From positions 62,001 through 126,000 of the IMG/VR virus record IMGVR_UViG_3300023257_000007: 64,000 nt of DNA; one strand, 5' to 3'. Below are positions 11,569 through 62,153 of the stretch, in pieces. A program made the translations under genes and the position numbers. Under the pieces are notes generated by a model. That model was given only the letters and a program-made list of their open reading frames with translations. It was not told the DNA's origin and did not search any database. The first letter of the stretch is position 1. Each line of letters begins with the position of its first letter.

Positions 11569-12636
11569 TTGATTAGTTACTTCGGAGGAAAAGCAAAAAT
11601 GGGTGAGTGGATATATCCATTTATTCCAAAAAACATTAAAACATACGTAGAACCTTTTTCAGGTGCTTTTTGGATTTATTTTAATACAAAAAATGATTTC
11701 ACACATTGTGATAAAGTTGTATATAACGATATTAACAAATATATGTTAAATCTTATGTATTGTGCTAAAGATCATCAAAAATTACTTGCAAAAATTGAAA
11801 GTGAGTTAAAACCAGGTGGATTTTTATACAATCCACACAAATTTAAAACACCAGAATATAAACAAGTTTATAAAGATTTGTATTATGAATATAAACATTG
11901 TAGAGATAAAAATAAATTCTTAGAAGATCCTATTTTTGAAATAGGTGACTATGATGCAGCAGTTAAATATGCATTTTTAATAACTTCAGCGTTTAATGGT
12001 TGTTTTCCTAAAGCTGCAGGTTTTTCAGGTATTGCAACCAATGGAAAATATAAATTACAAACATTTATTAATAAACTAAATAAAAAAGCAATTCAAGAAA
12101 AACTTGAAAGTATCACAGACTTTGAATTATTTGATTTTGAAGATTTAATTAAAAAATATGATAGTGAAGAAACTTACTTCTATTTAGATCCACCTTATTT
12201 CGATCCAAAAGGTAAAAGACTTGATTGGTATGGTGTTAAAGATGATAGTATGTTTGGTGTTGGTGGTCATGAAAGATTAGCTAATTTATTACAAAATACT
12301 AAAGCAAAATGGTCTCTATCTTACTATAATTATCCACAATTAGAAAAATGGTATCCAAATACAAAATACAATTGGGAATCTAAAGATTTCTTTAGAAGTT
12401 CTGCTTCTTTTTCAGACAACAAAGATGTGAAAGGAACTGAAATATTGATAATGAATTATAACTTTGAAGAGGAAGAGTATAAAAATAAGATGAAAAAATC
12501 TATACCTACAATAAAAGAAAAATTTAAAGATTGTACTGAAGAAGAATTTCCAAATAGAGAAAACGATAAAATATTACTCAACAAATTAAAAGATATTGGT
12601 GATAAAATGAACGAAAACGATGACTTCTGGAACTAA
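11569..12636 (+). CDS. dam: DNA adenine methyltransferase (Dam/D12 class)
   Basis: ISYFGGK, YVEPFSG, VYNDIN, YFYLDPPY, HERLA, TEILIMNY; TTG start. Confidence 0.9.
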   Translation: MISYFGGKAKMGEWIYPFIPKNIKTYVEPFSGAFWIYFNTKNDFTHCDKVVYNDINKYMLNLMYCAKDHQKLLAKIESELKPGGFLYNPHKFKTPEYKQVYKDLYYEYKHCRDKNKFLEDPIFEIGDYDAAVKYAFLITSAFNGCFPKAAGFSGIATNGKYKLQTFINKLNKKAIQEKLESITDFELFDFEDLIKKYDSEETYFYLDPPYFDPKGKRLDWYGVKDDSMFGVGGHERLANLLQNTKAKWSLSYYNYPQLEKWYPNTKYNWESKDFFRSSASFSDNKDVKGTEILIMNYNFEEEEYKNKMKKSIPTIKEKFKDCTEEEFPNRENDKILLNKLKDIGDKMNENDDFWN

Positions 12637-17362: not shown

Positions 17363-18055
17363 TTAACACATTTTCAATTTTTTAATTATATCACTAATAG
17401 TGCCTTTTGAAGCACAAAAATATTCAGCAATTTTAACTTGTTTAATATTTTGATTAAAATACATATCATAAACTTTTTCTCTATCAATTTTTGGTTGTTT
17501 ATATTTCAAATTATTAGATTTTTCTATAATTTCATCAAGATTTTCGTAGAAAAATTTTGAATCTGTATGTTTTATTGTGTGACAATTTCTACATATTATT
17601 TTACATTTATCTAATTCATTTTGTACTTTTTCACTCAAATCTTTTATACTATCAAATCTACTAGTTATATCACTTAAAATAAAATCCTTATTTCTTTCAT
17701 GATGAAAATTTAATGACGAATTACATTTATTATATCCACATATATAACATTTATCATCACCTAAATATTTTAAATAAATGTGTTTGTTGTGTCTCTTATT
17801 AGAAACTTTGCCAATTTTTTCATGTAATTCTTGATGACAATTTTGACAATATAATTCACACTTTTTTAACTCTTTCTCTATTATATTCCAGCTATAATTT
17901 CTTAAAACATTTAATGATTCTTTTTTATCATCTATATGATGAAAACACAATTTTAATATATTATCTTCACCACACATTTTACAAGAACCACCAAGTAATT
18001 TAACTGCTTTGTACTTTTTAGCAAAAACTAATATTTTTGTTGATAATTTTTTCAT
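17363..18055 (-). CDS. Double-HNH homing endonuclease-like protein with C-terminal HTH, inserted in the tRNA cluster
   Basis: Two CxxC..L.FHH..C...CxNCH..H units plus QVKIAEYF..SKGTISDII; real start is the ATG at 18055 (the track's 18100 start runs through a palindrome). Confidence 0.85.
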   Translation of the reverse strand: MKKLSTKILVFAKKYKAVKLLGGSCKMCGEDNILKLCFHHIDDKKESLNVLRNYSWNIIEKELKKCELYCQNCHQELHEKIGKVSNKRHNKHIYLKYLGDDKCYICGYNKCNSSLNFHHERNKDFILSDITSRFDSIKDLSEKVQNELDKCKIICRNCHTIKHTDSKFFYENLDEIIEKSNNLKYKQPKIDREKVYDMYFNQNIKQVKIAEYFCASKGTISDIIKKLKMC

Positions 18056-18104
18056 GTTCGAGGTTTTAATTTTATATATTAAAATTAAAACCTCGAACAT
18101 GAAA
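18050..18104 (-). promoter_or_regulatory. Perfect 25-bp hairpin with late promoter TATATA at the apex; stem includes the HNH start codon
   Basis: tttcatgttcgaggttttaatttta / taaaattaaaacctcgaacatgaaa, 5-nt loop tatat. Confidence 0.85.
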
Positions 18105-18182: not shown

Positions 18183-18192
18183 TTATTTCTTG

Positions 18193-18265
18193 ATCCCCCT
18201 GTCGGAATCGAGCCGACTTCCCCGATTTACAAGACCGGACATAATCCATTAAATGCTTAGGAGGA
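18193..18265 (-). tRNA. trnT: tRNA-Thr(TGT)
   Basis: TCCTCCT/AGGGGGA; CCGGT-CTTGTAA-ATCGG; T-loop CTCGATT (C at position 54). Confidence 0.88.
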
Positions 18266-18273
18266 ATATATAG

Positions 18274-18353
18274 AACCCCAAGTGGGACTCGAACCCACAT
18301 TTTCAATTCCAATTACCGATAACTGTTTCGAAGACAGAACGGATTACTGAGGT
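18274..18353 (-). tRNA. Atypical tRNA-like gene with Arg(TCG) anticodon; no canonical D-arm, expanded variable region
   Basis: ACCTCAG/TTGGGGT acceptor; CTGT-CTTCGAA-ACAG anticodon arm; GTGGG-TTCGAGT-CCCAC T-arm; only about 8 nt between acceptor and anticodon stems. Confidence 0.7.
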
Positions 18354-18362
18354 ATTTATTTG

Positions 18363-18436
18363 TATAAGCGGTGAGAGTCGAACTCACAATAATCCTCAGT
18401 CCAAGTGAGGCAACCACGCCAATGGATCGCGCCTAT
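18363..18436 (-). tRNA. trnP: tRNA-Pro(TGG)
   Basis: ATAGGCG/CGCTTAT; CCTCA-CTTGGAC-TGAGG; GTGAG-TTCGACT-CTCAC. Confidence 0.88.
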
Positions 18437-18467
18437 ATTATTACAAAAAATCAAAGAACTTACTCCA

Positions 18468-18513
18468 GAAAACAAAAAACCTCAACCAATGGTTTGAAAC
18501 ACTGGTCGAGGTT
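18468..18513 (-). terminator. Intrinsic terminator (candidate attenuator) between leader ORF and first tRNA
   Basis: AACCTCGACCA/TGGTTGAGGTT 11-bp stem (one G:U) followed by TTTTGTTTT on the minus strand, about 30 nt before tRNA-Pro. Confidence 0.8.
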
Positions 18514-18538
18514 GTGGTTTGATATATGGAGGATTAAA

Positions 18539-18646
18539 TTACAAATCCTCAAACTCTAACAGTGTAGGTATAACGGTGCCGGCCACGGGTCTCGTCGGAG
18601 TCCCTGTGCGTACTACTACTGCCATTATGTTAAAGTTTAAATTCAT
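18539..18646 (-). CDS. Candidate leader peptide MNLNFNIMAVVVRTGTPTRPVAGTVIPTLLEFEDL (35 aa; not in ORF track)
   Basis: ATG with A-rich upstream, TATATA at 18672-18677; GC-rich core codons; stop 25 nt before the terminator stem. Confidence 0.7.
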   Translation of the reverse strand: MNLNFNIMAVVVRTGTPTRPVAGTVIPTLLEFEDL

Positions 18647-18744
18647 TTTTATATCAATTTTTTCGTATTATTATATATTGACCGTAAAAAGTCAAATTTT
18701 TCTATTTTTATATTTATCACAAAAGTAGTTAAAAGTTTTTAAAA

Positions 18745-61901: not shown

Positions 61902-62153
61902 ATGGCAAAAGTAATTGAAATGACAGGCAGCCCTAAATCAGCGGGTTTTAAAACAAAATCTACTTTTTTAGAAAAATTAGCAGAATTTGGATTTACACAA
62001 TCTAAAATGAAAAAGAAAGATAACCCAGTAGATATATTAGTAACAAATGATCCTGGATCTACAACATCTAAAATGACACTTGCCAATGAATTAGGTGTTG
62101 AAATTATGACTTATGAAGATCTTAAAGATTCATTCAATTTAGAGGTAGATTAA
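61902..62153 (+). CDS. Stand-alone BRCT domain (LigA-type)
   Basis: MTG..KTK..F...L...G..VDILVTND..STTSKM.LA.ELGVEIMTY. Confidence 0.8.
   Translation: MAKVIEMTGSPKSAGFKTKSTFLEKLAEFGFTQSKMKKKDNPVDILVTNDPGSTTSKMTLANELGVEIMTYEDLKDSFNLEVD

Follow-up and report, generated by a model that had tools for sequence, protein, structure and literature searches.

A predicted phage tRNA-Arg(UCG) with a rewired D-arm region and its mostly unannotated relatives

Introduction

The cloverleaf connectivity of cytoplasmic-type tRNAs is treated as near-universal, and the known exceptions are truncations in mitochondria or length variants such as Sec, Pyl and allo-tRNAs. In the D-armless mitochondrial tRNAs, which include mammalian mt-tRNA-Ser(AGY) and the nematode and mite mt-tRNAs, a short connector replaces the D hairpin between the acceptor and anticodon stems, and these molecules are functional despite their non-cloverleaf shape (PMC7609411). 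Class II tRNAs (Leu, Ser, Tyr, Sec) and allo-tRNAs have a long region between the anticodon arm and the T arm, and class II variable arms are self-contained hairpins added to an intact D-arm (PMC5389517). Permuted, split or intron-containing tRNA genes of archaea and red algae have an order of segments that differs from the canonical one, but in those cases processing restores a canonical tRNA. Finally, tRNA-like structures and mimics, such as the plant-virus TLS and the bacterial/phage YrlA Y RNA, reach a tRNA-like shape, including a D/T-loop elbow, with non-canonical connectivity (PMC4201824).

Here we analyzed an 80-nt tRNA-like gene located in a phage tRNA array. The DNA examined, referred to as the window, is a 64,000-nucleotide stretch (positions 62,001 to 126,000) of the IMG/VR virus record IMGVR_UViG_3300023257_000007. 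A preliminary description of the element, based on the sequence alone, had proposed an Arg-UCG tRNA-like RNA that lacks a D-arm, has a D-loop-like motif displaced 3′ of the anticodon, and is a functional alternative-architecture tRNA or a tRNA mimic or decoy rather than a decayed pseudogene.

Results

The element in window 18274-18353 has intact acceptor, anticodon and T arms but no D hairpin

The sequence of the minus strand confirmed the preliminary description of the architecture. Only 8 nt, UAAUCCGU, are found where a D-arm of roughly 17 nt should be, and a 23-nt region located 3′ of the anticodon arm includes UAAUUGGA. The features identified, all on the minus strand and with the helices h1 and h2 as inferred below from covariation, are as follows.

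18347..18353 (-), acceptor stem 5′ strand ACCUCAG (tRNA positions 1-7), paired with 18275-18281 (7 pairs, 2 of them G.U)
18343..18346 (-), helix h1 5′ strand UAAU (positions 8-11), paired with AUUG at 18304-18307 and specific to the 8-nt-connector subfamily
18340..18342 (-), helix h2 5′ strand CCG, paired with CGG at 18316-18318; the rewired D-stem strand that leads into the anticodon arm (equivalent to canonical 23-25)
18322..18338 (-), anticodon arm UCUGU-CUUCGAA-ACAGU, with four Watson-Crick pairs plus a U.U at the stem top (27-43 equivalent); anticodon UCG at 18329-18331
18316..18318 (-), helix h2 3′ strand CGG (equivalent to the canonical D-stem 5′ strand 10-12), preceded by the linker UAU at 18319-18321
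18308..18315 (-), displaced D-loop UAAUUGGA, with A14/R15-like AA, G18 G19-like GG (18309-18310) and the A20 equivalent (18308)
18304..18307 (-), helix h1 3′ strand AUUG
18299..18303 (-), spacer AAAAU before the T stem; the final U is a candidate Y48 partner of the R15-like base
18282..18298 (-), T arm GUGGG-UUCGAGU-CCCAC
18274..18281 (-), acceptor 3′ strand UUGGGGU plus discriminator U (18274), with no encoded CCA

The alignment produced by Infernal with the Rfam tRNA model (RF00005) gave the same parse, with the D arm deleted (15 model positions) and a 20-nt insertion in the variable region. The score, 26.7 bits, was below the gathering score of 29 (E 0.001 on 260 nt), and no other Rfam family matched, including the YrlA and TLS models. 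ARAGORN made no call at this site in standard, intron, mitochondrial or 80% threshold modes, and at a 60% threshold only spurious overlapping calls appeared. The mitochondrial mode reported 0 tRNAs with a D-replacement loop.

The element lies 8 nt from tRNA-Pro(UGG) and 8 nt from tRNA-Thr(UGU) in a packed minus-strand array. Although tRNA-Thr (18192-18265) and tRNA-Pro (18362-18436) are called by ARAGORN, neither gets an Rfam tRNA hit even at E<=10; the former has an unusual T loop (CUCGAUU) and the latter a weak D stem with a U.U. Directly upstream of tRNA-Pro (18465-18695, minus strand) there is a promoter-like site (18695-18667), followed by a 35-codon ORF (18646-18539, MNLNFNIMAVVVRTGTPTRPVAGTVIPTLLEFEDL) and a strong terminator (18513-18478). 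In the core of this ORF, 19 of 20 residues are Ala, Val, Arg, Thr, Gly or Pro, the amino acids of the eight downstream tRNAs, and it uses very rare codons (CGC at 0.13 per 1000, CCC, CCG, GCC, GGG) as well as all four ACN codons. It could be an attenuator-type leader that senses these tRNAs. However, the stretch is 60% GC and strongly structured (z -4.6), and any GC-rich RNA would translate to these residues, so it may simply be a small structured RNA. Between tRNA-Gly and the start of the 245-aa ORF 17363-18100 there is a near-perfect palindrome of about 22 bp per arm (18050-18104), which produced many spurious microRNA-family hits in Rfam and looks like a bidirectional hairpin or terminator.

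The candidate would supply the only missing U34 family-box decoder among the tRNAs found in the genome

The window is part of a 344,634-bp virus record with 25.3% GC, found in salt-lake and marine metagenomes. ARAGORN identified 35 tRNAs that cover all 20 amino acids, with a U34 tRNA for every four-codon box (Ala, Val, Gly, Thr, Pro, Leu, Ser) except Arg-CGN; the only canonical Arg tRNAs are two UCU. A UCG tRNA is exactly the missing piece, although the genome is only about 48% complete according to CheckV and a canonical CGN decoder could lie in the missing half. CGN codons are rare (197 of about 79,000 codons, 8% of Arg codons) but occur in 124 of 244 long ORFs. No phage-encoded ArgRS was found in these 344 kb of incomplete genome. 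The genome also has two tRNA genes with CUA anticodons (G000, this genome, 112614-112688 and 140629-140701, outside the window), which ARAGORN labels Pyl. They may indicate partial or stage-specific TAG recoding, but the standard code already leaves 92% of the genome in ORFs of 100 aa or more and recoding is not needed here.

An identical copy of the element exists in a sister 348-kb contig. The phage was found only in DNA metagenomes and in no RNA runs, and DNA contigs showed only diverged copies in other salt-lake contigs.

Relatives of the candidate are widespread in phages

To determine whether the architecture is unique, pattern scans and covariance model searches were carried out. A pattern scan gave 37 distinct sequences with the same layout from unrelated contigs. 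In an anticodon-free scan anchored on the displaced D-loop motif plus the T arm, the rewired hits carried UCU (57), ACG (33), UCG (9) and CCU (7), all arginine anticodons. Since this pattern demanded GGA and was biased, the complementary scan (GG followed by not-A) was run. Its rewired hits all had GGU and the anticodons UAU (36), CAU (3) and GAU (2), with discriminator A. A generic structural finder that imposes no link between the anticodon and the base after GG found 230 members in 199 loci. In total, more than 200 distinct relatives were found. The member sets were seeded by patterns and relatives are not independent. Furthermore, the parsers required at least 6 of 7 acceptor pairs, the generic finder required two h2 pairs, and part of the T arm was fixed by the search patterns, so the conservation of these features is partly by construction.

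Members occur in cultured phages, namely Vibrio phage D260, Maribacter phage Panino, about 77 Streptomyces phages (Jay2Jay, NootNoot and others), Microbacterium phages and a crAss-like Kehishuvirus. They almost always lie in unannotated gaps of tRNA arrays or under spurious small CDSs. For example, in Maribacter phage Panino (L354 2413-2520) a 35-aa hypothetical protein, PANI_CDS0068, is annotated partly over the rewired tRNA-Arg(UCU) gene and is probably a spurious call, and in Streptomyces phages EGole and Mildred21 the corresponding sites are labelled tRNA-Leu and tRNA-Phe/HNH. In bacterial assemblies most pattern hits were ordinary class II tRNA-Ser, but about 21 true members were seen, including some inside dense tRNA arrays of two Bradyrhizobium isolates. 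A GOLLD RNA (177 bits) lies next to the tRNA array of Vibrio phage D260 (L353 4012-4427), and a bacterial-type RNase P RNA (168 bits) sits beside the tRNA array of another viral contig (L017 3892-4258).

Some members are outliers (L045, L068, L158 3452-3540, L183/L193). The three members of L045 have UAU and GAU anticodons with A rather than U after GG, L068 (2260-2346) has a duplicated anticodon-arm segment, and several members carry 10-15-nt insertions in the linker before the D-stem strand. A different oddity was found in three viral contigs (L004 ~1445-1530, L012 ~12510-12600 and L071 ~1295-1380) carrying class II-like tRNAs, with a normal D arm plus a long variable-arm hairpin, that bear the Arg anticodon UCG; these may point to an identity/anticodon mismatch.

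A covariance model built from 36 UCG members (model R1), the candidate among them, scored the candidate at 69.9 bits (E 2e-15), and the next best hit in the genome was an ordinary tRNA at 27.7 bits. Family members scored 40-84 bits and canonical tRNAs 36 or less. In contrast, ARAGORN correctly called 1 of 153 distinct members, and the Rfam tRNA model reached threshold for 9 of 26 members in 18 loci, at 30-39 bits against 40-76 for their neighbors.

Covariation supports a rewired D-stem

In a MAFFT alignment of the 36 UCG members, the structure composed of the acceptor, h2, the anticodon stem and the T stem was 94.7% paired, against 35-48% when partners were slid by 1-3 columns. The whole structure of the candidate's subfamily, which has an 8-nt connector and consists of 37 sequences including two from cultured phages, was 92.8% paired (35-49% for slid controls over both tests). 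Acceptor stems were 98-99% paired with many compensatory changes, and anticodon stems 95-96% paired. The two core pairs of h2, between the middle of the connector and the two bases just 5′ of UAA, were paired in 36/36 and 35/35 UCG members with three pair types each (CG/GC/UA and CG/GC/AU). In the subfamily they were CG 37/37 and GC 29 / AU 5 / CG 3. In this subfamily a second helix, h1, joins positions 8-11 to the four bases after GGA. Its pairs were 8-53 U.G 37/37, 9-52 A-U 37/37, 10-51 AU 18 / GC 18 / other 1, and 11-50 CG 24 / UA 6 / UG 3 / AU 1 / other 3, i.e., 97.3% paired. Neither h1 nor h2 was used to select the sequences in these two tests.

Other interior pairings failed on the same alignment. 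The preliminary description suggested that ATCC pairs with GGA(A)T. This is possible in the candidate but costs energy (-11.3 against -14.1 kcal/mol without it) and is not conserved in relatives: it is 57% paired, two of its four pairs fail in 26 and 34 of 37 sequences, and its only covarying pair is one it shares with h1. The rearranged pairing is instead UAAU/AUUG plus CCG/CGG. A local hairpin within the extra region (CGGU/AUUG) was 66% paired with no double changes, and one of its pairs fails in 34/37. However, h1 and h2 rest on covariation and not on thermodynamics. Folding of the single sequence is unremarkable (z -0.82), the MFE (-19.0 kcal/mol) prefers another interior and is 3.8 kcal/mol below the proposed fold (-15.2), and unguided RNAalifold recovered the acceptor, the T arm and a 6-bp anticodon stem but not h1 or h2.

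The displaced D-loop motif, UA(A/G)N0-3GG, is conserved family-wide, and AU before the T stem is nearly invariant. In two members where the R15-like A is G (L030 and L070) this U is also G, an observation made by eye and not by a statistical test.

These results also bear on the possibility that the element is a decayed or locally rearranged pseudogene left in the array. The sub-threshold Rfam score, the silence of ARAGORN, the U.U at the top of the anticodon stem, and the resemblance between two 11-nt stretches (CAGUAAUCCGU and CAGUUAUCGGU), which hints at an old duplication or recombination, could be taken in its favor. Nonetheless, the same architecture with compensatory substitutions occurs in more than 200 distinct sequences from unrelated phages and hosts that are not recent copies of one sequence (mean column identity 65-69%). 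Moreover, the candidate scores mid-range for the family and the U27.U43 is a recurrent trait, present in 17/160 Arg-class and 38/51 Ile-class members. This explanation is already contradicted and highly unlikely. It is equally improbable that the transcript is rearranged after transcription to give a canonical cloverleaf, as with the permuted or split genes mentioned in the tRNAscan-SE 2.0 paper. Restoring the canonical order would need an internal block moved across the anticodon arm, with two cuts and two ligations in a new order, no bulge-helix-bulge or circularisation signals are apparent, and covariation supports the helices as encoded.

Identity signals, 3′ ends and genomic context are consistent with functional tRNAs

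The bacterial identity determinants are A20, C35 and U/G36 for Arg, and A73, U20, U21, A35 and U36 for Ile (PMC9976931). Among distinct members, the base after GG tracked the anticodon class in the same way as position 20. It was A in 158/158 members with Arg anticodons (none had U), and U in 50/52 with Ile-type anticodons (A in the other 2; p about 2e-46). The discriminator was A in 51/51 of the Ile class and G, U or A in the Arg class, as in the published sets. In the candidate, GGA is found together with UCG.

In genomes whose canonical tRNA genes encode CCA, 77/81 rewired genes have CCA right after the predicted discriminator, and where canonical genes lack it 62/64 rewired genes lack it too (77/81 against 2/64, p about 2e-33). 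The canonical neighbors of the candidate also lack an encoded CCA. In Vibrio phage D260 the rewired gene is followed by CCA and the same AACAAT spacer as the preceding tRNA-Leu. Canonical tRNAs are found near the member in 185/199 loci, and only 17/126 array members share an anticodon with a canonical tRNA in the locus. In the Bradyrhizobium arrays, canonical Arg CCU, UCU and CCG are accompanied by a rewired ACG.

Discussion

The element is best explained as a functional elongator tRNA-Arg(UCG) with a rewired core that belongs to a widespread phage-borne family. This interpretation is strongly supported, although in the absence of RNA data expression, charging and decoding are inferred. In canonical numbering, which is also an inference, the block holding the D-stem 5′ strand plus the D-loop (positions 10-21) lies 3′ of the anticodon arm. 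The 5′ connector is U8, A9, the D-stem 3′ strand (22-25) and position 26, running straight into the anticodon stem. After the anticodon arm come a 3-5-nt linker, then 10-13, A14, R15, Y16, (N17), G18, G19, N20 (A20 in the candidate), a spacer of roughly 5 nt ending in a Y48-like U, and the T arm. Both local adjacencies of a normal tRNA are kept, the D-stem 3′ strand running into position 26 and the anticodon stem, and the D-stem 5′ strand into A14...G18 G19; only the joins are changed. The D-stem now encloses the anticodon arm, and in the candidate's subfamily h1 closes the far side so that the D-loop is an 8-nt bulge. We infer, by reasoning and not by modelling, that the GG bulge docks on the T-loop to make the elbow. 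We also infer that the host ArgRS reads A20 and C35, that RNase P, RNase Z and the CCA-adding enzyme process the transcript like its array neighbors, and that it decodes CGA and probably the whole CGN box, which would complete the set of one U34 tRNA per four-codon box in this phage.

The proposal that the element is a non-translating mimic or decoy that binds a nuclease, a modification enzyme or a synthetase is the less likely alternative and appears very unlikely. Its unusual core, its rejection by standard detectors and the absence of expression or charging data are compatible with it. However, a decoy has no need for an identity-matched position 20 and discriminator, a covarying 7-bp acceptor stem, the CCA convention of its genome or anticodons complementary to the canonical set, and the element keeps U33, A37 and a 7-nt loop, with only Arg or Ile anticodons in the family.

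A separate question is why the rewired core persists. Phage tRNAs are known to rescue infection from tRNA-cleaving defenses (PMC10264068, PMC11464382), and the fold could persist as an escape from host nucleases or toxins that recognise the canonical D-arm/elbow of tRNA-Arg or tRNA-Ile, and not for codon supply alone. The confinement to two identities suggests a specific pressure, some phages carry all four Arg isoacceptors in rewired form (L085), and rewired and canonical Arg tRNAs coexist in one phage. This idea remains doubtful. No nuclease specific for the D-arm of these tRNAs was identified here, no defense or counter-defense gene was seen to be consistently adjacent, although this was not examined systematically, and the mostly non-redundant anticodons are explained by simple decoding. 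Restriction to Arg and Ile can also come from one ancestor plus the single-base UCU-to-UAU switch.

We consider it somewhat more likely than not that phages, and the tRNA arrays they seed in bacteria, carry a previously unrecognised topological class of tRNA in two identity forms, Arg (A20) and Ile (U20, A73), charged by ordinary host synthetases and used in translation, whose rewiring may be maintained because it shields these tRNAs from host tRNA-targeting defenses. No description of this fold was found in full-text literature searches, including a 2020 review of non-canonical tRNAs with no mention of phages, the tRNAscan-SE 2.0 paper, a paper on tRNA gene fragments and the tRNA-array survey, but subscription-only papers were not covered and a prior description cannot be excluded. 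Such a family would show that the L-shape can be built from another strand topology, and that ArgRS, IleRS, RNase P, EF-Tu and the ribosome accept it. In practice, phage tRNA repertoires (Arg and Ile decoders for AGA, CGN, AUA) are under-counted, gaps in tRNA arrays are misread as missing isoacceptors and spurious small ORFs are called over these genes. The fold also offers a natural, possibly orthogonal, scaffold for tRNA engineering and a new angle on phage-host conflicts over tRNA.

The closest described systems include canonical bacterial/phage class I tRNA-Arg. It and the element share the 7-bp acceptor stem, the 5-bp/7-nt anticodon arm with U33, C35 and A37, the T arm with GUUCGAGUC, U8 A9, the GG and A20 signature and the location in a phage tRNA array, but the element has no D hairpin between positions 9 and 26, its D-stem 5′ strand and D-loop lie after the anticodon arm, and its subfamily has the extra helix involving positions 8-11. 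The D-armless mitochondrial tRNAs have lost the D-loop and its G18 G19 contacts and are shorter and floppier, while here a D-loop and a D-stem are kept but relocated, total length is normal to long (74-92 nt), and the setting is phage and bacterial with standard synthetases. As compared to class II tRNAs and allo-tRNAs, a local hairpin is not supported, the region between the anticodon and T arms pairs with the 5′ connector, and identity is Arg or Ile instead of Ser, Leu or Tyr. Unlike the products of permuted, split or intron-containing genes, the rearranged order appears to be the mature form. The tRNA-like structures and mimics are parts of larger RNAs or lack a decoding anticodon arm, whereas this RNA appears to have everything a decoding tRNA needs.
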